Source of the DNA: Macrostomum lignano
Taxonomy: Eukaryota
Length of the DNA: 64,000 nt
Direction: 5' to 3'
Assembly: GCA_002269645.1 (NCBI GenBank)
Contig: NIVC01002125.1
Coordinates: 1 to 64,000, forward strand
Of the stretch, positions 1-59,234 are shown in pieces. The position numbers and the translations under genes are program-made. Under the pieces are notes generated by a model that saw nothing but the letters and a program-made list of their open reading frames with translations, did no database searches and was not told where the DNA came from. Every line of letters starts with the position of its first letter. Positions within the stretch are counted from its first letter, which is position 1.

Positions 1-3000
1 ACGAACTATCATCCCGACAAGGCTGGCAGCGAGGCTGAAGACATGGCCAAGCTTCTGAATCAAGCCAAATCTGTCCTGTGCGATAAAAACCGAACGAATG
101 AAGTACGACGAACGTCGAGATGAAGCAACTGAGGATTACGAGAGTGGCGCTGATTTGCCTCGATTGCCAACTGGAAAGACACTATCGAAGGACCTCATGA
201 AGCAGAATCGCTGCTTGGAGGGAGAGTTCCGAGACGGCTCATGGAGCGCAATGCGACCCAAACGGATTCGCAAATAAGTTTTCGAGGAAACTCGTCAAGC
301 AGTTCTGGATCTTCAGGAGAAGCTACGGGTTATTAAGAGACGAGACGGTTCAACTCTGCAAAGCCCGTTTTTATTGAGAGTATCGCGTCAGGCGAGCTTT
401 CAGAAGAACATTTAGACGATGAAGTTCTCACCGAAGCCTGCAAATGGGCGAGAGAGACGCTAGAAAAAACGCTGAAAAGGAATACGCAGACGAAAGTTCC
501 ACCAGTTCAAGAAGGCGAACTAGTATGCTGCTATGACCTTTCCAGCTTGAAGGAAAGCGAATTGAGAAAACTCATGGTGATATTGATTCCTCCATCTGGC
601 TCCAAGCACTGTCAAGCGACCCCGAAAAGATGCGCCAAAGACTCAAAGATGTGTTACCCAAGTTTCGCGTCGACGTTAATAGAGAGAGAAGGGGTATAAA
701 GAAGTTTTTCCTCGGTGCTCGTTGTGTGGTATGCAGTGCCGAGAAAGATTTATCCGAACGAAATGCTTCCTTGTCGCAGGAGCCTGTCACGAGTTCAGAC
801 CTGTGTGTCTCACATGCTCTAAGCTTGAGTCCAAGAAGAGACTGCAGTTGTGGGAGGAGTTGGCAGCGACGCCTCAGACAGGATTTGTAGCTTCCTACGT
901 GGCGACAGGAATTGCAAGTATCGAAAGAATGATGCACAATCTGAAGATAAATCAGCCTAAGTCTGTGGTCGAAGCAACATTCGATCCTTCAATCGCTCTC
1001 ACTACAAAACTTTTCTTGCTGCTTCGGCGCTGTGGCTAGCTCTACAGAAGTCTCAACGCAATGAGCATGACATTGAGTCACTGCAGAGCCGTCAAACTGA
1101 GCTCGTACTGGAAATTCAGAAGAAAAAGATCCTGACCAAGAGCTGCGCTTGCTGTTACTCTTGGTAGAAAATGAAGAGTCTGCCTTGGAAAGTAATGAAA
1201 ATTTTCGATCTTTTTTAACACAAGAAGAAGCCCGGCTAAAGCTGATAGTTGACTCGGCCGATCTGAACAACTCGATTCACATTGCGTTCTCACAGTCACC
1301 GAGAGACAGGTTGCTGCTACGCCAGGCTAGCAAGTCAGCTAAGCTGGCTGACGAAGCACTTGCTAAAGCGAAACTTGAGTCAAGAATTGTAGGTCTATTT
1401 CTGAGAGGTGCAGGGATCCTCAGCTGTTCAGGTGATGTAACAGCTCAACTCAGAGGTATGAAGGACCTCACACAAGCAGTGCTCGAAGGATACTCTGTCT
1501 TCTACCACTCAGATTTGATATCATCTGTAATGCGTATTGTCTCTAGATTCGGAGCTCTTTGTGGGACATTTCCGGTTCATGCGCTGTTCCATTTAATCGA
1601 TAACCCATGGTCAGACTGCCAGGGAATGTTCAGTCGTCGGACTGCTTCGTCGGAAACACCAGCCAAAGCACAAGTCCCACTATTCCCAGGTATTTACGTA
1701 CCGGGACACAGCGTGCAAGCGTTGAAGAAGAGCGAGATCGCTATCTCCAGAAGACTCGAAAAGGGCCAAATGACGCCACTGCAAGCGGCAATGAGCGCAC
1801 TGGACCTTGCCATGGCTTGCGAAACGCTTGCTGAGGTCCTCGCCTGTTTTCTTGAGTGTGTAGCTCTGCTTCTACGAGCTCTGGAAATAGAGGAGTCGCT
1901 CTACCAGAGATATGCGCTCAAAGAAGCCATGTTTGAAATCGGGATCGCTTCAGTGAGCATTTGTCTCAACAACTTTTCCGATTCAGCTTTGTTAAACTAT
2001 GTTTCGAGACACGCTTTTGCCTTGCTGAGAGATGCCGCTACGAAAGTTGGACGACCAGATGATGTTGAACGGCTCATTTCGATTCTAGAGATAGTAGCCT
2101 TCACTGGTCGTTTCTCACCATTTGTGTCGCTGCCTCTGGTTCGTCCGTCTGAGTCGCTGGTATTTTCAAATGTGCTCAAAAAGTGCGCAGGTCAGCTTCT
2201 CTGTGGTTTGTCTCAGCCAGAAAATTCCTATTTTCTTGAACTACCGAAGAGTATCATAGCTTACCAGAGCTTGGAATACAGCATCAGCAGCTCTGCATTC
2301 ACTGAAAGTGAGACACGCCAGCTTGAGCTCTTAACTGCACGTGAGATGCTTAGAGAGCAGAATCTGGACTTTAACAACGTAGCCGCCCTGATAAATCCAT
2401 GCTATCTTGACGTTCCAGAGGACGGTTGGCTTGTACCAAATCAGACACTTGATTTTTCAGGATGCGGAAACACGTATTTGAGCATTGACAAGGTCATTTT
2501 TAACAAAATACGTTTCAAATTTCTGTCGTGGGCAGCAAAGGGAATCTTGTCAGCGATTTCGATGTGCTGACTGGTCTGCTAATGGATCATCCGGGTGTGG
2601 CTTTTAGCCTTGACAAGCCCGCCAATCTTCACGAAGCTCGATTCCACCCGTTTCAAAAGTACTGGAGTAGCCAACCAGATCTGCTTAAAGGAACTCCACT
2701 CCTAGACACTCTTTTCAACACGGACTACATCATGAAGCAATTCAGTTCCGGATTAGAGATCTGCAGGAAGCCACCGTTCGATCGGAGACCATTGCTTAAC
2801 GGTAGGGGTCTGTTCGCTGGACTGCCAGATCAGCTGCGCTGGCTGTTGAGACCTCTAAGCGAAAGAGGTGGGCAAAGATCTCGCTGCAGCAGATTCTGGA
2901 TTGCAGCCACAGACATGGAGATGAAAGTGGAGGAAACACCTGACACGATTGAGTTCGTGTTTGGAAAGGTTCGCTTGGAAGTCAAAACGCACAGGATGGT

Positions 3001-4570
3001 AGCTTCAATGGGTGGCGAACACCAGGACGCTGAGACTGATGATGAAGATTCTCCAGAGAATCAGTTCGCAAAGGACATGACGGAGGCCCTTCCCAGCTTG
3101 GGTAGATTCTTTCCCGAGTTTGAAAGACTAAAAGAGCTAACAAAGATTCCGAAACTCTGCCTGATTATTAAGGCCATGCACCAAAGCCTCGGAGCAATGA
3201 CCGTTCGCCAGGAGCAAGTAGAGCAAATTCTTGATCACGAACGAGCTGTTAGAATGGAAAAGAGTTATGAGATGGCGAAAAATGTTCTAGAGACACTGGA
3301 TCGAGCTGAATCAATCCCTGGTGCAAGCCACTATGATTGTTGCAATCTGGCCACTGATCAATTGCTAAGCCAACTAAACTTAAATAAGACCGAGACTGTC
3401 CGTGCCTTGCGTAGGCGAGATGTCAGAACGCTCCAGTACCTGTTGGCTGACAGTCTGCCATCAAGCTCTGCTGCGGATGTTAGGCAACAAATTCAAGATT
3501 TGATTGACTCGAAGAGAAGAGAATTTAGGAACTGGAACAGCAAGATACAGCATAAGTTAAATAGTAGCTTGCATCAGAGGCAACAGAAGATATCCGATTG
3601 TGATTGGGCACCCGCAGTGCTGAGCGCTAGTTCGGACGCAACAACACGATCGACAGTATACGGCGGTGTCTTACTGAATCCCAAATCAGTGCATTCCAGT
3701 TTTCGTATGGAGTTTCCCCCGGGAAGCACCGTTCACAAGGTAGTATCATTTCTGATTCTCGGCGAACTGAATAGCAAGCAGTTCGCCTCCACGCGGACTT
3801 TTGACAGTTTAGATTTAGGGACTGTAAACGAACTTCTTGGGAATAATTTTCCCGAAATGGAGAGTTCCTCTGACTCAGAGCTGGGCGGACGTTCAGGCCG
3901 TGACAATGAAGGCGCTACCAGCTCTGCTGACAACCAACCCAGAACATCTAAAAACGACCAGTTTTTGAATGATGAAGGAAACTGGTCTCACATCTTTTCT
4001 GACAAGCCCGGCCATGTGGTTCCACGAAACGCAAAAGAAGAATGGGAGCTGCGAAAAAAACTTGTCAGTATTCGAGATCTGGCTCTCAAAAAAGATCCGA
4101 GGTGCATTGACGCTTCTCAGCAATTTGTGCACGTCGAGGGACGAAAAAATAATTGTCGATTTATCTTCTACAAGGTAAGAAAAGATGCCATTTAAGTTTT
4201 AAAAATGATTGACTTTAAAGATTATGAAAAAGAAAATTTTAATGCATCTATATTTTTTAACAATGGTAATTTCAAGGACGAGAGGGAGACAAGTAGCGAC
4301 GTACTGCACCTAGCCTGGTGGATAAGAATCGATGGAAACGGGCGCATCGTCGGAGCAGGCTGCAACACGGTCCTAGCCAAGGAGCGAATTCCACAGTTGT
4401 TTCTGTTCTTGCGACCCATACCAACTGGCGAAGCTTTGATGGCATTTTTTCTGAGGGAGAAGCATAAGCTTCATGGCAAGAAAACAGACGTGGAGTTTCA
4501 TGATCACCTAAGCACCATTCGGAAAGGTCTGATTAATCAAATTAATTTAGTTAATCAGATCAAACCATAA
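1..4570 (+). CDS. Large multidomain protein, 5'-truncated by the window: J-domain, Cys-rich segment, helical region, DUF1598-like domain, low-complexity linker, toxin-like C-terminal domain. About 9 single-base frameshifts and one intron (4175-4276).
   Basis: Frame 1 from base 1 reads TNYHPDKAGSEAEDMAKLLNQAKSVLCD, and after a 1-nt shift R-M-K-Y-D follows (J-domain HPD motif and helix III/IV signature). Open frames continue with 1-nt shifts near 87, 206, 280, 370, 569, 745, 1012, 1125 and 2514 into ORFs 1149-2570 and 2528-4195. Donor AAG|GTAAGA at 4174/4175 and acceptor TTTCAAG|GAC at 4276/4277 join in phase 0 to the frame of ORF 4205-4570. Confidence 0.7.
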
Positions 4571-5031
4571 AGATACTAGAAACCGTAGATGGGCGTCTCG
4601 CCTATTTCGGGATTAAACTACTTTCAAATAGGCATCTGTTTGGAGTTTTTTGGATATATTTGTGAACCAAATTAAATTAATTTTTTTGCTGATTGTTATT
4701 TAATATTAGGATTCAACACTTGGTTTTGAGTGCTTAAATGTCTATGGCACTCGTGACCAAATATCATCGCTTTTGACGATCGGAATGGGAATTTGGGCAG
4801 TCGGAACGGGACGCCATAGACATTCAAGCCAGGCCACAGATCTCACCCTAGTCATGGACTTAAGCAGTTTAGCAAAGTCTACTGAGGGAGGCTAGGCCAT
4901 AGGCTATAAATTTGAACATTCAGTGTGGGAAAAAGCCATTCAAATTAAACGGGAATCGGACTGAGATTTTACAGCTCTCTGTCCCTCTCTCCCCTGTTTG
5001 TTCGTCTTTGGCCTGAAAGCGACCCCATTGA

Positions 5032-5345
5032 ATGGCGCCACCAATTCCTGTAGCAGATCGCCAGCGGCTGATTGATGCGATTGAACAAGGGTCATCCATC
5101 GCAGGAAGCTGCAAGAATCTTGTAAATCAAGAAAAAAACGGCATTCCGAATCGCTGCCAACTTTTGACTTGATGGCAAAGTGGAATCCCTTCCTCGCGGT
5201 GGTCGTAAATAAGGATTGTGCAAGGCCGATCAGGAAATGAGAGAATTCTTGGTTGAGAAACTCGATGAAAATCCTTTCCTGACGCTCAAGGAAATGTCTG
5301 AACTGCTGACTGAGCGCTTTCCCAAGAAGCCGCATGTTCACCTTG
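5032..5345 (+). pseudogene. Tc1/IS630-like transposase N-terminal helix-turn-helix remnant
   Basis: Reads MAPPIPVADRQRLIDAIEQGSSIA/AARIL*IKKKTAFRIAANF*LDGKVESLPRGGRK*GLCKADQEMREFLVEKLDENPFLTLKEMSELLTERFPKKPHV. The HTH, LPRGGR linker and ENPxLTLxEM pattern are typical of this superfamily. One frameshift, three stops, no DDE domain. Confidence 0.75.
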
Positions 5346-5434
5346 TTCTTCACTTTTAAATATTCCAGTGGCCCTGAGATATAAAAATACATTAAATTAG
5401 GCGAATTCCCGTTTTCAATGGCTTTTTTCCCATT

Positions 5435-5990
5435 TTGATTGTCAATTCCACATGCTATGGTTGTGTATTCCCAAGCAGCCCGAGCCTGTGGCCTGGCTTG
5501 AATTGAATGTCTATGACGTCCCGTTTTGATTGTCAATTCCACATGCTATGGTTGTGTATTCCCAAGCAGCCCGAGCCTGTGGCCTGGCTTGAATTGAATG
5601 TCTATGGCGTCCCGTTTTGATTGTCAATTCCACATGCTATGGTTGTGTATTCCCAAGCAGCCCGAGCCTGTGGCCTGGCTTGAATTGAATGTCTATGGCG
5701 TCCCGTTTTGATTGTCAATTCCACATGCTATGGTTGTGTATTCCCAAGCAGCCCGAGCCTGTGGCCTGGCTTGAATTGAATGTCTATGGCGTCCCGTTTT
5801 GATTGTCAATTCCACATGCTATGGTTGTGTATTCCCAAGCAGCCCGAGCCTGTGGCCTGGCTTGAATTGAATGTCTATGGCGTCCCGTTTTGATTGTCAA
5901 TTCCACATGCTATGGTTGTGTATTCCCAAGCAGCCCGAGCCTGTGGCCTGGCTTGAATTGAATGTCTATGGCGTCCCGTTTTGATTGTCC
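5435..5990. repeat. 91-bp tandem repeat, about 6 near-identical copies
   Basis: TTGATTGTCAATTCC recurs at 5435, 5526, 5617, 5708, 5799 and 5890. The last unit runs into the right inverted repeat. Confidence 0.95.
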
Positions 5991-6375
5991 AAATTCCCAT
6001 TTAGATTGTCAAAAGCGGTATTGCAATCAGGATATATATTTCTATTGCATTAAGTAAATAATAAACGTCGTTTAATTCACATTCCGAAGGACATTCTAAC
6101 CATAGACTATGATGAATTAAACAGCGTTTATCATATATGAACTTCGATTGATCCTGATTTCGAGGAGGATTATATGATATACCGGTATTAAACCACTTTA
6201 AAGCTCACTTTCAGGGAGGTTATTGACATAGATTTATTTTGCGCGATTTAATCGATCACTTTCCCGGACATTTTGCAAGGATTATTCTATGTATCTAAAT
6301 AAGCGAGCTTCTGCCTTCTCTTCCTTCGTGACTCAAGAAATTTCTTAATGAAATTTTGTCTATGGTAAGAATGTG

Positions 6376-6625
6376 GGGGCTTTGCCCCCACATCCCCAGC
6401 AGGGGCTTTGCCCCCACATCCCCAGCAGGGGCTTCGCCCCCACATCCCCAGCAGGGGCTTCGCCCCCACATCCCCAGCAGGGGCTTCGCCCCCACATCCC
6501 CAGCAGGGGCTTCGCCCCCACATCCCCAGCAGGGGCTTCGCCCCCACATCCCCAGCAGGGGCTTTGCCCCCACATCCCCAGCAGGGGCTTCGCCCCCACA
6601 TCCCCAGCAGGGGCTTCGCCCCCAC
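6376..6625. repeat. 26-bp tandem repeat with internal palindrome, about 9-10 copies
   Basis: Unit AGGGGCTTCGCCCCCACATCCCCAGC. Confidence 0.95.
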
Positions 6626-7818
6626 ACCCCATTCCCAACTTCAACCATAGACATACAAGTATGGCTCCGGGATTTATCTGAATACATCGGCTTCGGCTCT
6701 CGGGATTTAATCACATACCGACCTCAAACCCATAGAATATCTCATACATATCCTAGTTTTTGTCAAAATTACCATAGACAACACATTCCCGGCTCAGAAT
6801 AGTACAATTTTTAACGATAAAATGAGCAATCGTATTTTATATGACTAGCCAATATGCGATCACGAGCCATTTAAGCATGCTTTTTGTGTTTAATGCACGC
6901 TTTTACACATTTATATCCTGTTACAATAAGCACCTATTGGAAATGATTCAAAGTTCTGTGGGGTTGGCTACATTCCAAGGGTGTCACGCACATTTCATCT
7001 GTATATTTGATGGAATGCAGTTTACGACGTATGAAAGTATTTTTTCTCTAATAATAAGAATACACATACGAGCATATAGAGGGCAACTAGCAAGTGGAAA
7101 AGCATTGTCGTTTGACCAAATAGTGCAACAATGAGTTTAACCATGCAGGAATGCTTTAGTCTCACTTGAAAATAAACTACCGTAAACTCTACCGACAATG
7201 CTATACTATGTTTCTAGCATCAATGGGTCAAACAAATCAAATTTGAACTAAAAAACAATTGCTTTTTTCAGAATTCAACATTGTATCGGAACGAGCAAAT
7301 TCGGAGAGGCAGTACACTGCCGGAGCTCGACTCTCGGCGGCTGCCATTGCTGCTGCGGTGGAGGAAGGTCCGGAAGGATACGTTTTTGTAGAGTAGCTGT
7401 CTGGCTGCCTTTTAAGCTCCTTTACACTCAAGTGCAATCCCATTTCTGTGCGGATTTTTCGGATTTGCTTCCACTAAAATAGACATCACTTTTTTGTCTG
7501 TTAGCCGGGGCTCTAGTAGATTCCCTGTCATAGACTTGGTTGAGTATATAAATTTAGGACAACTTAGAGATCAAACTATTAGTTTTGAAGAAACATTTTT
7601 GCAATTTGGGAACTTTTTGTAACTTCCGGGATCCCGATGCGCATGATTGGTAACTTGTCAACGGCAATTTTTTTCATTTTTTATAGTTTTATGTGAAATA
7701 ATTGCATATCCAATTTGTATTTGATTTTCATTGTTAGTATTATACTTAGAGATTTAGCATATTTAGATAACTACTAAATAAGATATGTATTGGTATTGCT
7801 TTTGATTCTTACAATCAT

Positions 7819-8441: not shown

Positions 8442-9039
8442 AGTTTTGTGCTGGTTGTTACTGTTTTGCTACAATGATTGATGACTGCAATAAAGGAAAG
8501 TTCTCTGAATCATGCGGCAGAAGAAAAATGAATCATGAGTATTTTTATCGTTCATATTTTTTCTTTTTTCATCTGTTAGCCCATCCCGGTATTGAGGAAC
8601 CTCCGGTATTTGGGACCCCTACGCAGAGCTAACTTTAACAATCTTTTTTAATCTTAACCTTGAAATCAAAAACTGGTTTTCTGCAATCAACTTATAAAAT
8701 ATAGATCAAATCATTTCAACTGTACTCTCCATTTTAGATAGAATTTTTTCTATGCTGTCCTGACCTTTTTTAATTTGTCAGAGAATATACTGACCAGCAT
8801 AATTTTTTCTGCCATGATTACTTCTAAGTAGGGTGATACGAAATCACATGGCAAACCTTGTTTCCATATTTTCCCATTTTGCTAAACACAAATCACCCAC
8901 ATCACAAGCGCTTACGACGGAATAAAGCCATTATGAGGCAATTTGAAACTTTGAGGAAGAATACAACCGTGGATACTTCTGAGGTAGATTCTCCCATTCT
9001 GATTCTCCCATTCTGTGTGTTCCCGAATTGCAAAAAGTC

Positions 9040-9860
9040 ACCTGTCTGTGGCTTCATTCACCTGTCTGTGGCTTCATTCATCTGTCTGTGGCTTCAATTA
9101 TCTGTCTGTGGCTTCATTCATCTGCCTGTGGCTTCATTCATCTGTCCTGTGGCTTCATTCATCTGTCTGTGGCTTCATTCATCTGCCTGTGGCTTCATTC
9201 ATCTGTCCTGTGGCTTCATTCATCTGTCTGTGGCTTCACTCACCTGTCTGTGGCTTCAATTATCTGTCTGTGGCTTCATTCATCTGCCTGTGGCTTCATT
9301 CATCTGTCCTGTGGCTTCATTCATCCGTCAGTGGCTTCATTCATCTGTCAGTGGCTTCATTCATCTGCCTGTGGCTTCATTCATCTGTCTGTCTGTGGCT
9401 TCATTCACCTGTCTGTGGCTTCATTCATCTGTCCTGTGGCTTCATTCATCTGTCAGTGGCTTTATTCATCTGTCTGTGGCTTCATTCATCTGCCTGTGGC
9501 TTCATTCATCCGTCAGTGGCTTCATTCATCTGTCTGTGGCTTCACTCACCTGTCTGTGGCTTCGTTTATCTGTCTGTGGCTTCACTCACCTGTCTGTGGC
9601 TTCATTCATCTTTCTGTGGCTTCATTCATCCGTCAGTGGCTTCATTCATCTGTCAGTGGCTTCATTCATCTGTCAGTGGCTTCATTCATCTGTCAGTGGC
9701 TTCATTCATCTGTCTGTCTGTGGCTTCAATTATCTGTCTGTGGCTTCATTCATCTGTCTGTCTGTGGCTTCAATTATCTGTCTGCGGCTTTATTCATCTG
9801 TCTGTCTGTGGCTTCAATTATCTGTCTGCGGCTTCATTCATCTGTCTGTTTGTGTCTTCA
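9040..9860. repeat. About 16-bp minisatellite
   Basis: Unit CTGTGGCTTCATTCAT with 4-nt indel variants. Confidence 0.95.
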
Positions 9861-10179
9861 TTTATCTGACAGGTATTCACTGGGTCTCCCACTTGCCGTC
9901 TGAAATTCGTGGCATCTAATTAAACGCAGGGAAATTACCCCTCGCGCACGAAAGCCAATTATGTAAGGTCGGTCAGTAAAAGTACACAGTTGTTCGGGAC
10001 CAAAAGCAAAATATGTCTCAGCTGTAGCAAAGTCGCTACAGAGCTGTTCAGGCGTGTGGCAGACTGCTCATAGGAAAAAAGAGACCCGGAAAAGGAGTAA
10101 AAATAGATTGACTACTTGGCACTACTCATGAGCTCCTTTCCCTAATTCGATTGCTTTGATGAAGCCAGCATGTACCAGA

Positions 10180-14960: not shown

Positions 14961-15882
14961 AGTTAAAACATTCATTCAGAGCAGAAAATTTCAGCCAATG
15001 CTGCACACGAATTTCTGTGAAATATCGCAGATTTTTATCGCCAAACTGTCAGATCCTGCGTAAGCTGCTGAATTCATAGACTTACCCGGAAGTGCTATTA
15101 GGTGCAGTTGCTGGGCGAGCTGTGGGTTAGAACGCCCTTAGGGTGCAAATATCTCAAATTTTTCAAATATCCCAAAAGACCCAGATTTTTCCCTGGGGTA
15201 AACTGGTCCATAAAACAGGCTCGAGAACGGGGGGGGGGGGGTTTCGGGATAGATTAGGAGAAACCCTGAACAGAGCAGCAAGCTTTTGCCCAGTTCAAGT
15301 CAAGCGCCGAGAATGCATGACAATCAATCAAGCTGAACCCAAGCCGAGGCCCGGATCGGGCAACAGTCTCCGCGAGGAAGCGAAGGAGTAAAAAGAAGCC
15401 CTTGTTAAAAAAATCTGGCCGTCCGGCAGCAGAGACCAAATTTCTGTATTGATGGCAGGGAGCGCTAGTGATAGAAGTCTGGATAGGAAACTATTTTACC
15501 TACAAAACGAGACTAAAAATGGGTTCCTTTTCCGAAGCGATGCAAAATAGATTTGTACGAAATCTGTTTAGTTCAACTGTTATATTAATTATTAGTTTTA
15601 CCAGTCAATGTGACAGCAATCCAGATGCTGTATCAAGTATTCCCTGGCGCAGTGAATGCAAACAATAATTTTTCGATGCCTGGAAGATCTTAGCAACCAC
15701 TTTCTCTGTCTAGGAATTTCACAATGGAAAAATAAGTAAAGATTTACGAGCGTATGAATAAACCGCTGCTTTTGTGAACAGTTTTTAGTTTCCTGTCCCG
15801 TCAGAATCTAATAAGGTTCGCAGCAACGGTCATAAATCATTGCACGGCTGCGGTGAACTTTTATGCTGACTTATGCTTTCGG

Positions 15883-16975
15883 TCACTGACTGACTGACTG
15901 ACTGACTGACTGACTGACTGACTGACTGACTGACTGACTGACTGACTGACTGACTGACTGACTGACTGACTGACTGACTGACTGACTGACTGACTGACTG
16001 ACTGACTGACTTGTGTGAGTGGGTGACTGACTGACTGACTGACTGACTGACTGACTGACTGACTGACTGACTGACTGACTGACTTGACTGACTGACTTGA
16101 GTGAGTGGGTGACTGACTGACTGACTGACTGACTGACTGACTGACTGACTGACTGACTGACTGACTGACTGACTGACTGACTGACTGACTTGAGTGAGTG
16201 GGTGACTGACTGACTGACTGACTGACTGACTGACTGACTGACTGACTGACTGACTGACTGACTTGAGTGAGTGGGTCGGTGACTGACTGACTGACTGACT
16301 GACTGACTGACTTGAGTGAGTGGGTGACTGACTGACTGACTGACTGACTGACTGACTGACTGACTTGAGTGAGTGGGTGACTGACTGACTGACTGACTGA
16401 CTGACTGACTGACTGACTTGAGTGAGTGGGTGACTGACTGACTGACTGACTGACTGACTGACTGACTGACTGACTGACTGACTGACTGACTGATTGACTG
16501 ACTGACTGACTGACTGACTGACTGACTGACTGACTGACTGACTGACTGACTGACTGACTGACTGACTGACTGACTGATTGACTGACTGACTGACTGACTG
16601 ACTGACTGACTGACTGACTGACTGACTGACTGACTGACTGACTGACTGACTGACTGACTGATTGACTGACTGACTGACTGACTGACTGACTGACTGACTG
16701 ACTGACTGACTGACTGACTGACTGACTGATTGACTGACTGACTGACTGACTGACTGACTGATTGACTGACTGACTGACTGACTGACTGACTGACTTGAGT
16801 GAGTGGGTGACTGACTGACTGACTGACTGACTGACTGACTGACTGACTGACTGACTGACTGACTGACTGACTGACTGATTGACTGACTGACTGACTGACT
16901 GACTGACTGATTGACTGATTGACTGACTGACTGATTGACTGACTGACTGACTGACTGACTGACTGACTGACTGAG
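15883..16975. repeat. (GACT)n microsatellite with TGAGTGAGTGGG interruptions
   Basis: Direct reading. Confidence 0.98.
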
Positions 16976-17870
16976 CACATTCATCAAGCTCTGAGCAGCT
17001 GCAGCATCTGAGCAGGTCCTGTCCCTCAAATTCGTTACAAATTGATTATCAGATGCCACTGGAAATCCTCTGGGTAGACTTGGCTGGGTGGAACAGTTGG
17101 AATTTCTTAAGACGCTCGGGCCTGCCCCAGTTTTATCTCCTTTAAGGCATCGGGTGGGATCGGCATTCCCGTCAGAAAATCCCCTTGGAGTTGGACACAC
17201 GCCCTTGGCTTTATCATCTCTCACTGTGCTGGTCAGTTATGAGATTTATGCATATTCGCGATATAAATATACTCGCCACTATACGTTTCCACCTGACAAG
17301 GCAGGCATGCAAAAGTACAATTAGCTTGCCGGACGGGGGAGGTAAAGAAGCCAGGAAAGCAGAGCGACAAAGAATCCCAGCCCACGCAGCCATGTTTGCT
17401 ACAGAACTGCCCTACAGGCCCAGTTCGTTTTCTGTACACGAGGGCCAGATGCAGTTTAGCCCAGAAGCAAAACTTGAGAGGCCCGAACGAAGCACTGAAA
17501 ACTCTTGACCCGAAAGTTTACGACCGACCAGAGGGGAAATTGGGAGTAATGGGCATAAAACAGGGAAGAGAGGCTAGGATTGTAGGGCATAGGAAACGCT
17601 TAGGAAAATATGCAAATTATGTGATATAAACAAATACTCCAGTGCGATGCTGTGTGCCTGCATTGCCCCTCAGCAATGCGTAAAATTTCTGCATATCTAA
17701 TCATTCACACCATCCGCAGGCTTTGGAAATTCCGCAATATTTTATACTGCCCCGACCCGGGAGAGATGGCAGCGCAGATGTGCGAAAGCTGCACCATCCA
17801 AAGGACTGCAATTGGCAAGGGGAGCCTCGTCAGCCGAGTGAAAGTGCATTGTGTCCTAGTTGCTGATTGG

Positions 17871-18596
<726 letters not shown>

Positions 18597-19479
18597 AACA
18601 GTGCTTACATATTTAGCTCGTCAAAGAACAAAGGGATTAAACATCAGGTTGTATACATTAAGTTTTTTAATGTTTTAGCAAAAGCAAGTTTCTGCGCAGA
18701 ACAGTCATTAGATGAAGTAAATACTGTAGTTTTAACATAACAGAAAGCAGTCTTCACTGAGACCATAACCGCGGGCCCAGCGATCAGGTCATTGGGATGC
18801 CTCCAAGCCAGCAAAGTATGTGGGGCTTCAACATGACGGGAGCGGACTACAGTATTTACACTGCAGCTTCATGCAAATTCATTCAAAGACGCGAGGGCGC
18901 ACACAAAAGAAAACGGCACTCGGGCATGTCTCCAGCGGGCATTTAAAACCAAGATGTAAATATTGATTTTTGTTGACAACTCCCAGCTGAAATTGGAATC
19001 CAACCAAATCACTAAGCATCACTATGGCCTCAATCCACTCCCTCTAGCAGTTTCTGAAGAGTCGGGTACCAGAATTACCAGAACGGAATGATCTTTTCAG
19101 AAAAAAACAGAGTGCACGGACGGGACTGCGAGGCATATTTGATGGTGCCTGAAGCTGATGGGAAAAGTATAAATTATCCTGCTTGAACAGCCTACAGCCC
19201 ATCGGGTCTGGTTAGACACTGGAAACTGGACTTTGCGTGTCAGTTGGTCAAAGGCGGGAGATTACAGAGACGACCTGTGCTGGCTAAGGGTGGTTAAAGC
19301 TATACGAGGGGAAGGCTGCTGAGACTTGTAACCAGATAGAGAGAGAGAGAGAGGAAGTGGATGCCCTGAATTTGCATCATTCCATCTCGCTACAAAACTA
19401 TTTTACAAACTCTCGATCTGGCCTTCTCTCAAAGTCCAACCTGCTTTGATCTGGGCCGACGCGTTAATAGTACATTGGA

Positions 19480-20103
19480 TAGAGGGAGGGAGAGAGAGAG
19501 GGATGTAGAGAGAGAGAAGGAGAGAGAGAGAGGGGCAGAGAGGTAGAGAGGAGACAGAGGGGGAGAGAAGGGGAGAGAGGGAGATAGAGAAGATAGAGGG
19601 AGAGAGGGGGAGAGAGATGGGAGAGAGAGTGAGAAAGAGGGGAGAGGGAGAGAGCGGGGAGGAGTGGGAGAGAGAGGGGAGAGAGAGTGAGAAAGAGGAG
19701 AGAGAGCGGGAGAGAGAGGGAGAGAGAGGGAGAGAGGGAGAGAGAGGGGGAGGGAGGGAGAGAGAGGGAGAGAGAGGGAGAGAGAGGGAGAGGGAGGGAG
19801 AGAGAGGGAGAGAGGGGAGAGAGAGTGAGAAAGAGGAGAGAGAGGGAGAGAGGGAGAGAGAGGGGGAGGGAGGGAAAGAGAGGAGAGAGAGGGAGAGAGA
19901 GGGAGAGGGAGGGAGAGAGAGGGAGAGAGGGGAGAGAGAGTGAGAAAGAGGAGAGAGAGGGAGAGAGAGGGAGAGAGAGGGAGAGAGAGGGAGAGTGGGA
20001 GAGAGAGGGAGAGAGCGGGGGAGAGTGGGAGAGAGGGAGAAAGCGGGGGAGAGTGGGAGAGAGAGGGGAGAGAGGGAGAGAGGGGGGAGAGAGGGAGAGA
20101 GGG
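19480..20103. repeat. Degenerate GA-rich polypurine tract
   Basis: Direct reading. Confidence 0.95.
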
Positions 20104-20691
20104 GCAGAGTTCTGTAGCGACATGCAGGGGCCTGAGAAGCTGCCTTACAATACAGTCTATAACAATCTGAATTAATCATTATAACACGCGAGGATAGGGA
20201 ATGAGAGGGAGCATATAGATGATTAGTTTAAACAATTATGAATGCATATTTTTCAATATGCACAAAAAGCATTGAACACAATAGCCAGACTGCTACCTGC
20301 ATGTCTTGAAATAAATTGCCCAATAATAAACAGTGTGACGTTTAGAAGCAACAAAATCTGCTCTTTATGATGTAAATACAGAAAACAGGTGAGAATGCTG
20401 TTCGGCCAGGCGGGAAGTTGACGTCGGTCAGATATTGATTTGCTTTTTTGGTATGGGGATTATGCGAGCTGATGGCGACACAGATAATACAGCTTCCCAA
20501 TTAAACATAAATACTCGTATTAGCGTGTCTGTGCGCACGCGTCCAACAGACTTTGTAGAGTATTTTATCCGGACTGGACTAGATTCTAATCCAGACGAAA
20601 TTCCAAATATTAGTAGTCCTTGCCTGAGCCCTGAGTGTGTTAGTTTATATATATATAATTCTAGTAGCTCAGAGAGGCGCCCCAGCCTCCA

Positions 20692-23600
20692 TCACTGCGG
20701 CGAGGGAAGCTGGTGGCCATTGGAGGCGGCGCACTGCAGCTCCAGCGCCGGCGGCTCCTCTTCTGCCCCCTCCTCCTCGATCGCCGCTTCGACGCTGCCG
20801 TTACCAAGCTTGCCGTCGCCGTTGCTGCAGCCATTGACGTCGCCGTCGCCGTAGCCCTGGACCGCCGCCCGAAGCCGCTGCAGCTCCTCCTTCTGGGCGT
20901 CGTATTTCGCCCGCAGCCGCCGCACATCCGGCGAGCGAAGCTCCTCAACTTGCCGGCGAAGGCGCGCCAACTCGTCCCGATCGACCTCGGCCTGGGCGCA
21001 GCGCCCCGTCAGCCGGTCGACGACCTGCTGCAGGCCGTCGATGCGAGCCTGATAACCCGACTTGACCTTCTCCACCATGGCCAGAAACTGCGGGGTGGCC
21101 TTCTCTGGCAGGTGGCCTTCGCCCCAGTCGGTAAGCGACTCCCAGTCGGATGCGATGGACTCTGCGAAGGAGTAGAGTGGGTTGCTAATCTCGCTAGTGG
21201 ATTGCTAATCTCGCTAGTGGATTGCTAATCTCGCTAGTGGATTGCTAATCTCGCTAGTGGATTGCTAATCTCGCTAGTGGATTGCTAATCTCGCTAGTGG
21301 ATTGCTAATCTCGCTAGTGGATTGCTAATCTCGCTAGTGGATTGCTAATCTCGCTAGTGGATTGCTAATCTCGCTAGTGGATTGCTAATCTCGCTAGTGG
21401 ATTGCTAATCTCGCTAGTGGATTGCTAATCTCGCTAGTGGATTGCTAATCTCGCTAGTGGATTGCTAATCTCGCTAGTGGATTGCTAATCTCGCTAGTGG
21501 ATTGCTAATCTAGCCAATCTCGCTCAGTTTTCTGTCAACCTGCTGCTTATTTCCGCTAACGTAAAAACATCCTTCTTCTAGCTATGAATACAAATGGCCT
21601 TGTCAAATGTAGCGCTAAGTCTCCCCAGTATCGAAGTGGCGGTAGGAGCTGCGCTGTAATCGAGGTGAGCTTTTTCTACACGGGCGGAGGTAACAGTTTG
21701 GTCTCGTGACTACCGCTTGTGTTCTCTATGTGTTGTTTTTGTGTCTGTATCTGGGCCTAGACTGGGAGTGCAGAGGGAAACAACAAGGGAGAGAGAGAGA
21801 GAGAGCTAAAGCCTCCATAGTATCGATTCTAGATTTCGCATTCTCTACGCGACAACAGCGGAGCCAGATGTGACTGCACCATTGGCTTCGCTACACTTAG
21901 AGTTGGAAAATTTCCTCGTCACTTTCCGAGCTCAGCTACGAAAATATGCGCCGACCAGCAAATGAGTCAAAGGTGAAGGAGAAGAGATGAGAGAGGGTAG
22001 ATAGGAGTGATGGCTCCAAACAGGAACCAACTGCTTCTGCTCACCTTCGAGCGTCATCGGGCTGCTGGGCGCTTTCTCGGGCTTGAGCTGATCCAAGAAG
22101 GCCTCGGCCGACGATTTTGCCGCAGCCGAAGGAGGCGCCGGCCCGGCAGCTTGATTAAGTCGAATATTGGGCGCAAATTCCTGGGGTTGCACTTGCCTCG
22201 ATTCTGCAGTTGCTGCTGCTGCTGCTGCGGTCTTCTGCTCCTGCTGCGACGAGCTGTCGGGACTGAGCAGCGCCGATGGCTTCTCTTCGTCTTCTGGAAC
22301 TTTTTGTTGCTGCTGCTGCTGCTGTGGCGGCTGCTTTTGCGACTGTTGTGCCGGACTAGTAAGGCCGTTGCTGCATCTAAATGCGATTCAACGGTATTCG
22401 ATTGCGTTGTATCAAAAAAACAGCAATAAAGAGCATCTGTAAAATTAATTTAGGAAGGAACTCACGGCGAAATCGGACGAATTGCCCCGGTGGCGATGCC
22501 GTTCTCAATGTGGCACCGTCTGCTGTTGTTGAGCAGCTTGTGCCGTTTTGCCTCTGACTCGGGACCGACTCCGTGATGGTTTCCATTGGCAACGGGCTGC
22601 AATGACAGAATGCAATGAATTATATTCCAGGGATCTGATACCGAATGACCCGATACCGAAATGGCACCAGTTGGTCCCGATACCGAAATGGCATCGAATG
22701 GTTCCGATACCGAAATGGCACCGGTTAGTCCCGATACCGAAATGGCACCAGTTGGCCCCGATACCGAAATGGCACCAGTTGGTCCCGATACCGAAATGGC
22801 ACCAGTAAGTCCCGATACCGAAATGGTACCAGATGGTCCCGATACCGAAATGGTACCAGATGGTCCCGATACCGAAATGGCATCGAATGGTTCCGATACC
22901 GAAATGGCACCGGATGGTCCCGATACCGAAATGGTACCAGATGGTCCCGATACCGAAATGGTACCAGATGGTCCCGATACCGAAATGGTACCAGATGGTC
23001 CCGATACCGAAATGGCACCAGTTGGTCCCGATACCGAAATGGCACCGGATGGTCCCGATACCGAAATGGCATTCAAACATGAATTTAGGGAACAACTCAC
23101 CAGCAGCATCCCTGGCCGCTTCCTGGCCTCAAATCTGGCCTTCACAGCCTCCAGCGTTCTCTCCTGACTGTCCGAGTCCCGCTCGGCCAGCCGCCTGTCC
23201 AGCATGAGGTACAGCCGCCATTTGGTCGAATCGAAGCCCCAGTGGCAGGTCTCCCGCTCCGGCTGCACGTGGACGTGTCCGACAAACTGGGCTGGCGACA
23301 ACAAGCCGGAGCAGCCCGAGCACACGATACACGGCGCCTCCGGGCAGGTGTACAGCCGGGGAATGAGGAAGCCGCGCTGCTTGCCGAAGCAGCGGTGGTA
23401 AACGCAGGCTCCATCCAGCCCGGTAAGCGAGCCTTGGTAGCGCGGCAGATCCGGGCTGTTCAGCAGCAGCCATTTGCACAGCCGTTCAGCGTCCGACTTT
23501 GTGATGAGGCCGCAGTTCTCTAGGCGAGGCCCGAACACGCGGCGCTGCTGCAGCAGGTTCATCTGGTTGCTGGTGCAGCGCTGGCAGTAGATGTTAAGCT

Positions 23601-24249
23601 CCTCGCAGACCCGGTTGATGTCCGCCAAGGTGACCCCCGCCCGCAGCAGCACATTGTTAAGCACCTGCGGCAGGCACAGTCGCTTTTCGCCTCCAACAAC
23701 AAATGCGTAGATGGCTTTGCCTTCGAGAATTGTCTCGACAAAGTCGCCGGTCTCCCTTGAGGCTCTCGAGTCGGGCGGTTGGAGCGGTGGTGGCGGCGGT
23801 GGTGGAGGCGGAGGCGGCGGAGCGGCCCTGGCCGCAATCAGCCGGCCGTCCACTTGAGCTCCGATCGCGTGCAGCCCGGCCGGGAAAACCTGCGCTGCCG
23901 CCAGCTTCAGCTGCGGAGGTGGCGGCGGCGGCGGTGCTTGTGGCGGTGGCGGCCGCGGCTGCCGCGGCGGGGGCTGGAGATGATGATGAGGATGCGGCTG
24001 GCGCTGATAGGCATGGTGATGCTGATGATGCGGAAGTCGCTGTTGTTGCTGCTGCTGTTGCAGGTGCTGATGCCCATGTCCTGCCGACTGCATATAGGGA
24101 TAGGCGCCCAAAGGCTGGCCTGGCTGCATCTTCGCTGAGGCAGCAGCGGCGGCTGCAGCGGCGGCTGCCGCGTAGCCCTGCATGTTGTGCAGCATGGACA
24201 GCGAGGCCGAGGACGTCTGGTTGAACAAGTTGAATCCGTTCGAATTCAT
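20692..24249 (-). CDS. SKI: SKI/SnoN-family transcriptional co-repressor, 4 exons: 24249-23101, 22596-22466, 22376-22045, 21161-20692 (693 aa)
   Basis: DHD domain (ETILEGKAIYAFVVGGEKRLCLPQVLNNVL...CGLITKSDAERLC), SAND-like SMAD4-binding domain (VYHRCFGKQRG...CIVCSGC...SPAQFVGHVH...TCHWGFDSTKWRLYL) and a C-terminal coiled coil. All three introns are GT-AG and phase-consistent; the exons total 2082 nt. SKI and SKIL cannot be distinguished. Confidence 0.93.
21186..21517. repeat. 20-bp minisatellite in SKI intron 3
   Basis: Unit GGATTGCTAATCTCGCTAGT. Confidence 0.95.
22650..23070. repeat. 27-bp minisatellite in SKI intron 1
   Basis: Unit CCCGATACCGAAATGGCACCAGTTGGT. It explains the repetitive part of ORF 22462-24255. 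Confidence 0.95.
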
Positions 24250-24605
24250 TGCCAACCGCTTGCTGCTGTTGTCGCTTAATTAGTGGCTTAAGTGGCCAGG
24301 TATTGGCAGCAGACGGCTGTCGGCATGGGTAGCCAGAAATTCCTCCAGTCTAAATATTTATTCCTCTATCCCCTTTTCTTCTTTTAGAAGAGAGAGGGAG
24401 AGAGAGAGGGGAGAGGTGGGGCGCAGGCAGTTCGAGGATGGCAGACTGGCGGAGGCTCTGGAGTGGCTAGTAAACACTGGACTTTAGAGTTTAACTGCGT
24501 TCGTTCTGAACCTAAGAGGAAGAGTTGGAGGACGGGGTGGGTGGCGCCGTCTCGGGGGTATCAAGTACGCTGCGCAGTTTTTAGCTTCGGTGAACTTCTC
24601 CCGCT

Positions 24606-25287: not shown

Positions 25288-25461
25288 AGCAGTTTCTAGC
25301 TGAAAGTCGTCGAAAGAAAAATTATGCTAATAACTATCTGGAATATTAATTCGTCAAAAAATTAAAATAAAGTTTTCCCATCTACTTACTAGCAGTAGGT
25401 ACTTTCGAGGAAAAAGCTCCTGCTGCGCATTATTGGGCAGAACTATAATCAAGAGCCACCC

Positions 25462-26046
25462 ATTGGTGCTGGCGCCCCTTGGTGCTGGCGCCCCTTGGTG
25501 CTGGCGCCCCTTGGTGCTGGCGCCCCTTGGTGCTGGCGCCCCTTGGTGCTGGCGCCCCTTGGTGCTGGCGCCCCTTGGTGCTGGCGCCCCTTGGTGCTGG
25601 CGCCCCTTGGTGCTGGCGCCCCTTGGTGCTGGCGCCCCTTGGTGCTGGCGCCCCTTGGTGCTGGCGCCCCTTGGTGCTGGCGCCCCTTGGTGCTGGCGCC
25701 CCTTGGTGCTGGCGCCATGAGGGCCAAACCCCATGAGGGCCAAACCCCATGAGGGCCAAACCCCATGAGGGCCAAACCCCATGAGGGCCAAACCTCATGA
25801 GGGCCAAACCCCATGAGGGCCAAACCCCATGAGGGCCAAACCCCATGAGGGCCAAACCCCATGAGGGCCAAACCCCATGAGGGCCAAACCCCATGAGGGC
25901 CAAACCCCATGAGGGCCAAACCCCATGAGGGCCAAACCCCATGAGGGCCAAACCCCATGAGGGCCAAACCCCATGAGGGCCAAACCCCATGAGGGCCAAA
26001 CCCCATGAGGGCCAAACCCCATGAGGGCCAAACCCCATGAGGGCCA
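25462..26046. repeat. Two abutting 16-bp minisatellites
   Basis: CCTTGGTGCTGGCGCC to about 25716, then CCATGAGGGCCAAACC to about 26046. Confidence 0.95.
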
Positions 26047-28045
26047 GACTCTCAAAAAAAGTTGAGCCGTTTTTTCTGAAATCCATCGCATGCCTACCCA
26101 CATACAGACAACTCATTTTTAGTTCATAGGATTAGCAATGTTTGTTCAATTAAATGACTAACTAAAAAAGTCCCCGCGCGGCCAATAAAATTGATTTTCG
26201 CCCAATCCGCGCGGGAGTTTCGGTCTGGTTTTCGTACGCACACCAACACGCCCTGGGCTCCATAGTGGCCTGAATGGGGAAAAGGCCAAACTGCTACTAA
26301 GACGAAGGAGCAGGATATGGGGGGGATAAAGTGGGACAGAAGAACACAGCTAAGGGGAAGAGAATTTCGGATAGAAAGAACTGGGAGAGACAGAAAAAAG
26401 CAGAGGCTCGCAAGCCAGTGTGCGTGCGCAATGGTGGGTGCGCAATGAAAGCCTGTTTTCGGACATATAATCAGGTCAAAAGTGCCGCCTGGGACTACGC
26501 CGACACCGCCGACTTTTCTCCCTCTCTCCGTCTCTGTCTCCCTCTATCGGACACTTCCATCCTCTCAGATTTGCCGCCTTCAGTTCTCCGTCTCTCAATA
26601 ACTTTCTCTCTAACACTGTGTTTCTTGCTTGAGTTTTAAAGAATCTTTCCTTTTGCTGTAGGCAGAGATAGGGAGAGAGAGAGACAGAAGGCGAGGGAGC
26701 GGCGCGTTGTGCGTCGTTTCACCATTCGAAATTCGAAGTCCAAGCCAATTTTGAGACAGGCTGGAGCCGCTCTCAGCCTGCGTTTTGTTTCTTCGGTTTC
26801 ATTTTTTTATTTAAAAACTTTCTGCTGACCTCTCAGTCAGCCTAGCGGCAGTATCGAGTGCTGGTGAGTTGATTATATTGTGCGAACTTTGCTCTGCTCA
26901 TTATTGAGGCCGGTATGCACTGGTGCAGCATCTGCAGTGGATACGCAATCGGTCCCGAATTCGGTCCACCTGAACTGCTGCGTCATCCTCTGCCCAGGTT
27001 AGAAAATCTTCCTCAGCATCCCCATTCGCCCGGCTGTGAGCGACAAGTTCAGCTGTACACTGAAGTCCTCTCTTGACTACGCCATCGCCAACCTCATGCC
27101 TTCAATACTTGCTAGTCTTCTGCCACCGCCATTGCAGAATAAGGGGGATATTTAAAAGCAGTATCGTGTGGTTTGGGGGGATACAGGGACAGTAGTATCG
27201 TAGTCAAACTAGTAGTAATTGCAATATGTTATAATGCAAAACTACAACTGTCTGGGTCCAGCGAATAATGCTGAGGGTTCGGAAATGTAAAGATTTTCTA
27301 TGAGAGACGGAGATACGAGAGGGTAGGAAGATGGGGCCGCAGCAGCCAGGCAGCTTGCACGCTGATCAATAATCCCCTTACACGGGGAAGATCCTCTCCG
27401 TGCTGGCAGTCCCGCCCCACAGCCACGGCAGTCTGAATCACCGTTCATCGGGTCTCCACCCCCCCCCCCAAATCCCATCTGCGCAGCGCTTTCAGGCTGT
27501 CAAAAGCCCAAAAAAGGTGGGCAGCGAGCGAAGGTGCCGCTTGCTGTTTCCCTCTGCCCATTCTACCCCCGAGGGGGCTGGAATCCGCTCCATCCTTCCT
27601 CCGAAGGGCAATCTGCCTACGAAAGCCAAGGATGTGCTGGGCGAACCCACAGAAAGTCAGCCAATCCAAACAGTTCGCGCTCAGTTAACGGCGCCATGTT
27701 CACCGGGGGCGCAGCCGTTCTGCTTTTAAATTAGTCCAGATGGACAGCCGTCTCCTTTAACTACAACTTCTAGTCCCGTCTCCGCCTTACTCTGCTTTCT
27801 TCCCATTTTGGCAGCCGAGGAGCGACGCTCCCCTTTCACCCCCCCCCCCAATTCTCCCGGACGCGCGTCTTAATTCATCTGTCTTGGAAAGTTTTTGACT
27901 TTTCACGAATCGATTTCACTGATCGAAATCAACTGCGTGCATCCTGCAGCGACGGAGCCACCGAATTCGGGCGGCAATCTTCGCCGCCAGTCACTGCAGC
28001 AGGCAGCGGGGCTTCTAGGGTGCTGTTGAAATACCGGAGACGGCA

Positions 28046-42544: not shown

Positions 42545-43315
42545 ATTTTACTTTAATAAAAAGAATTCTCTCTAGCGTGCCTCCATGGACGCCCCCTCTC
42601 TCTCTTGATCTCTTGAGCTGCCCTTTTCTATATCACAATTTTTTCTGATCAGTTTGTTTTTCGTCCTCGTGTCTTTTGCTGAGAGATGAGACGGGTAGCA
42701 ACTTTTTATCGAACGTTTTTTTCAATAATCACGCATGATGTGAGCGGTTTTTTATTGTTAGTAGACTACTGTAAGTAGCACGTTTCGCTGACCAGCCGAC
42801 ATTGGTGCTGCAAACTGGTGAAGGACTACAACTCGATTCATTTTTTTCTGAGGTCTGAAAATCAAAGCTGCACTGCTGAACTAACTGTACATTAGCTTGG
42901 CTTTTCTAATGTTGAGCAGATCCTTGGGCTAAAATATCACTCACTTCATCGATTCTGTCCCTTAAATTATTCACTATGCAGTATTTGCTTATGAATTCCT
43001 GTCAAGTCGAAGGAACCCAAAGAATGGTACAAAAACAGGTCAGGTATTTTTAAAAGCTTTTCTCAAGACTTTTTATTGAATTTTTAACGGGTTTTTTTAA
43101 GCTGCTAAGTTGCAAAATTTCGAGTAATTTCTCTTTTAGCTCAAAGTGTGCTGAATTTCAGTATGGAACATTAAATATGCGAGAAATAAATTGCAATCAA
43201 ATTCAGCGCATGCGATGGTACCTCGCTTCTAATTTTATTAAGCCAGCTCTTCGTGTCTGGATTAAAACGAAGTTGCAAATTCACTCAGATTATAGATGAG
43301 AAACACGTGCCGTTC

Positions 43316-45021
<1,706 letters not shown>

Positions 45022-45099
45022 ATGCAATAAGTTTCTACCGGCAGTACATGCTACAAAAGTACACTAGAAGATAATTTTAACGTGCCTGCAGATTCTTTG

Positions 45100-46190: not shown

Positions 46191-46199
46191 TCTGGAAAT

Positions 46200-54700: not shown

Positions 54701-54929
54701 CAGATCCAACTACAACACAGCCATTCATTTGGACTCAGATTCGGAGACTGCGACTGATGGCCAAAGAAGTGAGAGTCCTCCAAGAAAAAGATATATTTAT
54801 AGTTTATCAAAAAGGATTTTGATGAAGTTCAGTCTCATGAAGAGATTTTGATAGAGTTCATTTTTTATGGAGAGAATTTTGATGGATTTGGCACATTAAA
54901 TGAGTCAGAGAAAAAAAAATATAGAAAAG

Positions 54930-59199: not shown

Positions 59200-59234
<35 letters not shown>

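Follow-up and report, generated by a model that had tools for sequence, protein, structure and literature searches.

Organisation of a J-domain gene in Macrostomum lignano

The DNA analysed here is a 64,000-nucleotide (nt) stretch of Macrostomum lignano contig NIVC01002125.1, referred to below as the window, and its first 4,570 nt (plus strand) hold the 3′ 98% of a single gene. The gene encodes a J-domain, a trunk, a conserved core, a low-complexity linker and a basic C-terminal domain (the tip), and its product belongs to a widespread, apparently undescribed protein family, designated here the J-core family. An earlier note, made from the letters alone, had read the gene as built like a polymorphic toxin; the HPD J-domain, the sequence motifs, the Ser/Asp/Gly linker and the basic tip that it reported are all found where it placed them. 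In UniRef the gene product is matched at 99% identity by A0A1I8GVL3, annotated as ‘J domain-containing protein’, and the partial NCBI protein PAA62765.1 falls in the same cluster.

The window begins within the J-domain (TNYHPDK), the C-terminal two thirds of which occupy positions 1–125, with the HPD tripeptide at 10–18. Pfam DnaJ (PF00226) matches this truncated piece with E = 4e-5 and the database protein P0001 with E = 6e-13 (49 bits against a cut-off of 27.8), identifying it as a J-domain. A weakly conserved region follows (126–714, delimited by contig comparison, with slight similarity to the relative P0026 at 367–603), then a degenerate zinc-finger remnant (715–830; CVVC...C..AGAC...CLTC) at the position where relatives carry a FYVE finger. 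The trunk (831–2527; roughly 550 aa) matches nothing in the databases, including Pfam, and its 1683–2450 portion aligns to the trunk of relatives by tblastn. The conserved core (2528–3700) was delineated by a phmmer family search, alignment, a conservation table and an AlphaFold2 model. It comprises an alpha/beta part (2528 to ~3140; HPFQ, TDYIMK, RFWI, FPEFERLKEL), a helical insert (~3140–3600) and closing beta-strands (DWAPA at 3602, VYGGVLL at 3656). Its motifs lie at 2708–2737 (TLFNTDYIMK), 2747–2758 (SGLE), 2891–2902 (RFWI), 3065–3139 (FAKDMTEALPSLGRFFPEFERLKEL) and 3656–3676 (VYGGVLL). The linker (3701–3979), the counterpart of Gly/Ser-rich linkers in relatives, is of low complexity in its final 126 nt (3854–3979), where the stretch EMESSSDSELGG... 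is rich in S, G, D, E and N. The tip, of 162 amino acids (aa) with an isoelectric point of 9.7, is encoded by two exon parts. The first (3980–4174) carries the ‘NWSHIFSDKPGH’ motif of what we call the WHF-type module, recognised by alignment with 6 relatives and a tail profile search. The second (4277–4570) ends in the stop codon at 4568–4570, and its final ~60 residues are protein-specific and modelled with low confidence.

The two exon parts are separated by a 102-nt GT...AG intron (4175–4276) with donor AAG/GTAAG and acceptor TTTCAAG/GAC. Reading through it leads to a stop after 7 codons, while splicing joins ‘...CRFIFYK’ to ‘DERETSS...GRIVGAGC’ and restores the ‘G.I..AG’ strand (‘GRIVGAG’), the Gly and Ile of which are invariant in related tips. 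The earlier note had counted a single intron, which holds within the window, but a second short intron lies upstream of it, inside the J-domain (GTGAGT...TTTTTTGCCAG, followed by ‘LLGVTQ...’). This upstream part was read from our comparison locus, the Mlig_3_7 contig NIVC01001901.1 (GCA_002269645.1), which encodes PAA62765.1 and which we treat as a second assembly. There a short first exon (ATG...MANSDLPSFYS) precedes the intron, and the full-length protein would be about 1,520 aa. By inspection, the N-terminus MANSDLPSFYSLLGV leads directly into the J-domain, with no hydrophobic leader or signal peptide. The observation that the gene avoids the GC-rich codons of its neighbours also held: the GC content at third codon positions is 0.46–0.52, compared with 0.64–0.89 in six neighbouring exons or genes.

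Frameshifts and integrity of the gene

In six-frame translation, the window shows mixed frames across 1–1150, then an uninterrupted frame 3 open reading frame (ORF) of 473 codons (1149–2570) and a frame 2 ORF of 555 codons (2528–4195) that runs to an in-frame stop and is followed by 121 more codons to 4570. About 12 frame-breaking indels fall in 1–1150, with a further cluster at 2001–2020 and one at 2504. The mapped sites (85, 200, 278, 338, 351, 366, 606, 760, 1010, 1114, the 2001–2020 cluster and 2504) are all absent from NIVC01001901.1, and several sit within short homopolymer runs. The first is a 1-nt insertion in the run GATAAAAAC, where tblastn of relatives passes from frame 1 to frame 2 at about 85–89; the indel at 760 interrupts the zinc-finger remnant.

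Window positions 1–6959 align with NIVC01001901.1 at 99.66% identity. The 6,969 aligned positions include 5 mismatches and 19 gaps, the difference being almost entirely one of 1-nt indels. The comparison contig reads the gene in one frame except for a 2-nt deletion of its own, at a point where the window is intact (837–838). Reconciled and with the intron removed, the two yield one continuous ORF, 1,514 codons long when counted from the annotated partial start. This equals 1,490 codons from window base 1, in agreement with the roughly 1,490 codons that the earlier note had obtained by repair. Comparison of 121 relatives singles out 39 core positions that at least 85% of them share. The window protein departs from these at only two, both hydrophobic or aromatic (L to I and Y to L), and retains the conserved polar residues of the platform.

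Taken as given, the window could be read as a decaying pseudogene, with genuine frameshifts in 1–1150 and at ~2504–2520 and no encoded protein. Some 14 frame disruptions, the degenerate state of the zinc finger, and the 2-nt deletion in NIVC01001901.1 together with its annotated 343-aa truncated product would all fit such decay. However, the frameshifts differ between the two assemblies, so none is corroborated, and 19 gaps against 5 substitutions is a signature of error rather than of mutation. The 3.4 kb of the window from 1149 contain a single frame break, the tip stays in frame across the intron, and the conserved core positions are retained almost without exception. Since the indels are private to one assembly, a single ORF is recovered on reconciliation and the core positions are kept, we conclude from the sequence comparison that the gene is intact, that its repair was legitimate and that a pseudogene is very unlikely.

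As a separate observation, indels far outnumber substitutions between the assemblies across window 1–6959. Frameshifts in other genes of the window should therefore not be taken as signs of pseudogenisation without checking.

Contamination of the flatworm assembly by a bacterium, such as a chlamydial symbiont, was also considered, given that Chlamydiota encode the same architecture (see below). The gene, however, contains two spliceosomal GT-AG introns and is physically linked in the window to animal genes: a SKI/Sno gene (22462–24255, minus strand; Ski_Sno_DHD and c-SKI_SMAD_bind domains) and a SOX-type HMG-box gene (58504–59340, plus strand). It is present in both assemblies compared, which we regard as independent, and its best matches are eukaryote-type members (E of 1e-49), with chlamydial ones reaching only about 1e-28. 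On these sequence grounds we reject contamination, which has next to no probability.

The J-core family

A word-indexed homology search returned one unrelated match and zero family members; the family was found only by an exhaustive phmmer search over 1.84 billion cluster representatives. With a threshold of E ≤ 1e-3 this recovered 422 representatives, 57 of which reach E ≤ 1e-30, so that the family comprises at least 422 sequence clusters. Most are proteins of 1,300–2,200 aa with the match in their C-terminal third. The common layout is a J-domain, usually a FYVE finger, a helical trunk, the 400-aa core, a low-complexity linker and a variable tip. Named members are those of Macrostomum, Hydra vulgaris (XP_065651170.1) and Oscarella lobularis (XP_065841676.1), and the closest relative of the window protein is 37% identical. 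No relatives were found among IMG/VR viral contigs. Full-text literature searches, the coverage of which is incomplete so that an earlier description is possible, yielded no account of the family or its architecture.

The FYVE finger of relatives passes Pfam thresholds (E = 8.8e-18 in P0006 and 3.7e-11 in L027). The Macrostomum protein gives no FYVE (PF01363) match at E ≤ 0.1, and its 715–830 region has only six cysteines, where a FYVE finger has eight that bind zinc, and no R(R/K)HHCR-type basic motif for PI3P (phosphatidylinositol 3-phosphate) binding.

On large eukaryote-like contigs, the family protein is one uninterrupted ORF of 4–6.5 kb among neighbours fragmented into short ORFs, and intron poverty is therefore a family trait. 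In many cases the J-domain of relatives is encoded by a small ORF of its own further upstream, as would be expected from a single 5′ intron. A variant of the architecture occurs on an AT-rich, Asn-rich eukaryotic contig (L031, 3095–5497), where the core is fused to a C-terminal LIM domain and there is no J-domain.

The core is related to a domain of RHS proteins

AlphaFold2 modelling of the window’s 400 core residues, built with 20 relatives, gave a mean predicted local distance difference test (pLDDT) of 83.7 and a predicted template-modelling score of 0.75. The model shows an alpha/beta domain broken by a long helical insert. The earlier note had proposed a Foldseek comparison of AlphaFold models; the core was modelled confidently, but neither core nor tip found a significant match in the PDB, with nothing below E = 0.7 for the core. 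Profile comparison of the core with PDB sequences picked up designed helical repeats only (E ~0.01), on the helical insert, and no Pfam or NCBIfam model matches the core.

Two distant, RHS-associated bacterial proteins provided a link. The Verrucomicrobiae protein L008 matches the family core profile at 47.8 bits (E = 2e-15, local search) and carries the motifs ‘TMFEADYLLK’, ‘RFWF’ and ‘LPILEKLKNLGKI’. Its core-like domain, within 2742–7469 of the locus, comes directly after an Rhs-associated core (TIGR03696, E = 2e-22) and is itself followed by a second DUF6531+RHS unit. L034, a metagenomic protein (119–3079), contains the core twice in tandem (E = 3e-20), ahead of DUF6531-like sequence. On this profile evidence, the core is homologous to a domain that adjoins RHS repeats in these two proteins.

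The same two proteins bear on the suggestion that the core is DUF1598-like. They score 17.7 (L008) and 23.3 (L034) bits on Pfam DUF1598 (PF07643), below the gathering cut-off of 25, over the same 35 residues at ‘EADYL(L/M)K’, out of 84 in the model. The window protein and 21 relatives, in contrast, show no match even at E ≤ 10. The suggestion thus gains weak support from the bacterial intermediates and none from the animal proteins themselves: a remote relationship between core and DUF1598 is plausible, with membership not established.

Tips differ across the family

For 119 family members, the tail was cut after the end of the core. These tails form 34 similarity clusters, and iterated profile searches sorted them into types. 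The most frequent type is a zinc finger followed by a GIY-YIG module (24/119), followed by a small module restricted to the chlamydial clade (17) and three further modules with 9, 8 and 6 members. The module of the window protein accounts for 8 tails, and 47 are unclassified. The GIY-YIG identity is backed by Pfam (E = 2.8e-6) and by the PADLOC UzuA model (E = 1.3e-6); PADLOC matched nothing else among the tips. One protein, P0022, carries a WHF module and then a GIY-YIG module in tandem.

Tip types are intermixed when 141 cores are arranged in a neighbour-joining tree, and for pairs of proteins with 60–70% core identity, tails had no detectable similarity in 26 of 66 cases. At the level of the family, the conserved trunk, linker and swappable tip anticipated by the earlier note are thus borne out. 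Two metagenomic loci share trunks of 90% identity, and in both the long ORF stops precisely at the linker. One of these, L018 (JGI metagenome contig Ga0126336_10002699, 4060–5094), has a trunk ORF that closes with the Gly/Ser linker at a GTAAA splice donor (‘GKGG/gtaaa...’) and a 151-aa zinc-finger+GIY-YIG ORF ~570 nt downstream. The tip of this gene is evidently encoded on a separate exon, judging from the ORF layout, which would provide a simple route to tip exchange.

Some tails have features of their own. P0006-type tips contain an R..G.YW...GGG.Q pattern that recalls TNT-like nicotinamide adenine dinucleotide (NAD) glycohydrolases, and ‘HxxKKD’ tips have invariant H, N, N, H and D residues in an HNH-like arrangement; neither resemblance is supported by Pfam or PDB sequences. 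KVW tips have no PDB match. Ten of the 119 tails (e.g. P0013, P0024, P0030, P0046 and P0051) have, after the Gly-rich linker and before the tip, a strongly hydrophobic stretch of 17 residues that may be a membrane-inserting element and that is absent from the window protein.

The WHF tip of the Macrostomum protein

The WHF module has the consensus HxWxHVFxxKxGHVxPK...GxIxSAG. In the AlphaFold2 model of the window’s tip, residues 10–106 reach a pLDDT of ~90, and the ~95 conserved residues form a sheet of three to four strands with a helix packed against it. The tip contains no GIY-YIG (PF01541) motifs, and the expectation of a toxin-like nuclease at this end of the protein was not supported, with no match to a toxin in Pfam, in PDB sequences or by fold. 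The conserved His, Lys and Gly-His of WHF tips would suit a small hydrolase that needs no metal, which is a guess.

Downstream of the gene, positions 4570–6000 contain no plus-strand ORF of at least 60 aa. This interval holds a 200-aa minus-strand ORF (4940–5542) that matches no Pfam family, and tandem repeats; the repeat directly downstream of the gene (5428–6000) has a period of ~91 bp, visible as staggered self-matches in the contig comparison.

Members in intracellular bacteria

A scan of prokaryotes, with one genome per species, identified full-length members in bacteria. Proteins with both DnaJ and FYVE domains come from three Chlamydiota genomes: one of the Waddliaceae (1,855 aa, encoded on a 2.29-Mb contig), one of the Parachlamydiaceae (1,755 aa) and a further one (1,612 aa). 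DnaJ with no FYVE detected was found in Tatlockia (Legionellales; 1,369 aa) and on a gammaproteobacterial contig (1,523 aa). The bacterial connection suspected earlier is therefore present in two forms, J+FYVE+core in Chlamydiota and J+core in Legionellales-like bacteria. Gene neighbours are bacterial: RimK, a PHO4 transporter, an AstE/AspA-type enzyme and an ankyrin/Sel1 protein, while a related 2,605-aa protein adjoins the cyo operon. The Waddliaceae homologue (L004, 6867–10266) is flanked by an IS605-type TnpB (with a Cas12f1-like TNB domain) and a DDE transposase, and so sits in a mobile region of the genome. We found no characterisation of these bacterial proteins in the searchable literature. 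A further candidate, L002 from a ‘Stappiaceae MAG’ (metagenome-assembled genome), was left out: its gene is split, with the FYVE in an upstream ORF, and it shares 80% identity with a eukaryote-type member, making its binning doubtful.

As judged by these similarities, the animal gene, the proteins of intracellular bacteria and the RHS-associated domain share a common ancestry. In a core tree rooted on the RHS-associated domains, divergent sequences including that of the window collapse to the root, and because of this long-branch behaviour the direction of transfer cannot be read from the tree.

The distribution raises the question of whether this is a selfish mobile-element gene, an intron-poor giant ORF that spreads horizontally and whose GIY-YIG tips are homing or integration nucleases. 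Such an element would explain intron-poor genes of atypical composition among intron-rich neighbours, a patchy taxonomic spread that includes intracellular bacteria, and the transposon genes that lie beside some copies (DDE_1 and RVT_1 in L012, besides the Waddliaceae locus). Yet no transposase, integrase or reverse transcriptase is encoded within the ORF, nucleases account for a minority of the tips and viral relatives were not found. There is no second copy of the gene within the 64-kb window, and with the closest relative only 37% identical there is no sign of recent spread. We consider this explanation improbable.

A proposed constant platform with a variable effector tip

With moderate confidence, we favour the view that the window holds an intact, spliced M. 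lignano gene of the J-core family, whose products combine a constant platform with a variable effector tip, most likely with a role in biological conflict. J-domains with an HPD motif recruit Hsp70 and stimulate its ATPase, and FYVE fingers bind phosphatidylinositol 3-phosphate (PI3P) on endosomal, phagosomal and autophagic membranes. Given the cytosolic nature of both domains and the lack of a signal peptide, the protein would act in the cytosol. Its J-domain would recruit Hsp70 and activate the chaperone’s ATPase, and in relatives the FYVE finger would place the protein on PI3P membranes, namely endosomes, phagosomes and autophagosomes. The tip would be the variable effector, mounted on a constant platform of trunk and core; many relatives have a predicted GIY-YIG nuclease with a zinc finger in this place. 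The anatomy suggests that the platform carries this effector, together with Hsp70, to PI3P membranes. New tips might be gained at the linker by recombination or exon shuffling and diversify under conflict, in a role that could be defensive or else selfish and toxin-like. The Chlamydiota J-FYVE-core and Legionellales-like J-core proteins would presumably be effectors delivered into host cells.

Several points weigh against this view. The activity and toxicity of family members are predicted only. GIY-YIG is the sole recognised tip type: five others lack a Pfam match, three of them also a PDB-sequence match. The window tip has no Pfam, PDB-sequence, PDB-fold or BFVD-fold match, the best hits being NTF2-like fragments at E ~0.25. 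The FYVE finger is eroded in the Macrostomum copy, for which membrane targeting may not hold. Variation in the tips is known from comparisons between representatives less than 50% identical overall; four near-identical copies (the P0008 cluster) differ little, and the chlamydial clade carries one conserved tip and so is not polymorphic. No immunity-like partner is evident beside the gene, a criterion that may be inapplicable to a eukaryotic cytosolic protein. Finally, J plus FYVE would also fit a housekeeping role in trafficking.

That last point can be developed into an alternative in which the family consists of ordinary endosomal or autophagic co-chaperones similar to RME-8/DNAJC13 or auxilin, with C-termini serving as lineage-specific adaptors. 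A recruiter of Hsp70 to PI3P membranes would be expected to have exactly J and FYVE domains, and an adaptor function would be consistent with a window tip that lacks toxin similarity and with recognised identities for only a minority of tips. It is harder to reconcile with GIY-YIG nuclease tips in 24 of 119 tails, or with unrelated tips on trunks that are 60–74% identical in the core. Nor would a housekeeping protein be expected to share its core with RHS proteins, to occur in Chlamydiota and Legionellales, to have named members restricted to a sponge, a cnidarian and a flatworm, or to lack any Pfam or NCBIfam family for that core. We consider it doubtful that the family is of this kind.

A bolder form of the platform-and-tip view can be advanced only tentatively and, in our estimation, is probably not correct as a whole. 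It holds that the family is an Hsp70-powered intracellular counterpart of polymorphic toxins, exchanged between Chlamydiae/Legionellales and early-branching animals or protists. Here, a constant J-FYVE-trunk-core platform would sit on PI3P membranes, and the core, a novel structure, would process or present the C-terminal modules. These, nucleases and several unknown folds, would be swapped at the linker, in part through exon shuffling, in an arms race with intracellular parasites or rival genomes.

If true, animals and their intracellular bacteria would share an undescribed modular effector platform that unites chaperone-recruiting and membrane-targeting domains with interchangeable enzymatic tips. 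Polymorphic-toxin logic, known from secreted weapons of bacteria, would then reach cytosolic proteins in sponges, cnidarians and flatworms, and the family would offer a concrete case in which to study gene flow between Chlamydiae/Legionellales and their animal or protist hosts. Further gains would be a domain of ~400 residues without a solved relative and several candidate new effector folds. Because Macrostomum lignano and Hydra are laboratory models, the hypothesis should be testable by experiment.

Comparison with known systems

Rhs/YD-repeat polymorphic toxins likewise join a constant N-terminal part, through a junction, to unrelated and swappable C-terminal modules that include nucleases, and the J-core core itself occurs inside the RHS proteins L008 and L034. 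The J-core family differs in having cytosolic J and FYVE domains in place of a secretion or trafficking domain, RHS repeats and a signal peptide; the window protein and its animal relatives have no RHS/YD repeats or Rhs-associated core by Pfam, and only the distant bacterial homologue L008 has these features. No adjacent immunity gene was seen for the window gene, and variation is known at the level of the family. A survey of polymorphic toxins (Zhang et al. 2012, PMC3482391) mentions none of DnaJ, FYVE and DUF1598. Since secretion modules and RHS repeats are absent and no immunity gene is evident, we do not file the J-core family as a polymorphic toxin. Bacterial polymorphic toxins are nevertheless its closest analogues, with a homology, detected through the RHS-associated domain, that is real but distant.

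The eukaryote-like effectors of Chlamydiae and Legionella offer a second comparison. Full-length J(+FYVE)+core proteins are found in intracellular bacteria, in one case beside an ankyrin/Sel1 gene and in another beside insertion sequence elements, whereas the window gene is a spliced animal gene.

Among eukaryotes, teneurins and Crinkler/CR-type effectors combine a constant head with a variable or toxin-derived C-terminus and have links to bacterial toxins. YD shells are a feature of teneurins, which are type II membrane proteins, and the header of CR effectors is ubiquitin-like. They follow the same head/tip logic as the J-core family but have no sequence relationship to it, and none has a J-domain, FYVE finger or the family core, making them analogues only. 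Sacsin (DNAJC29) is a giant cytosolic animal protein with a J-domain near its C-terminus beside a HEPN domain, the remainder consisting of HATPase-like repeats. Like the J-core family it combines a J-domain with a C-terminal domain of a nuclease superfamily, but the trunk and core are not homologous and the tips are not variable, so that it too is an analogue only.

Other features of the window

A multi-exon coiled-coil gene at 28046–42544 (plus strand), previously called SOGA, showed no SOGA Pfam match in the five exons tested. Long micro- and minisatellite blocks give rise to spurious ORFs of 150–600 codons in several frames and on both strands. They lie at 6295–6800, 8858–9919, 15830–17224, 19400–20180, 25354–26116, 43253–45067, 45051–46544, 46859–47647, 48317–49498 and 54865–56335.

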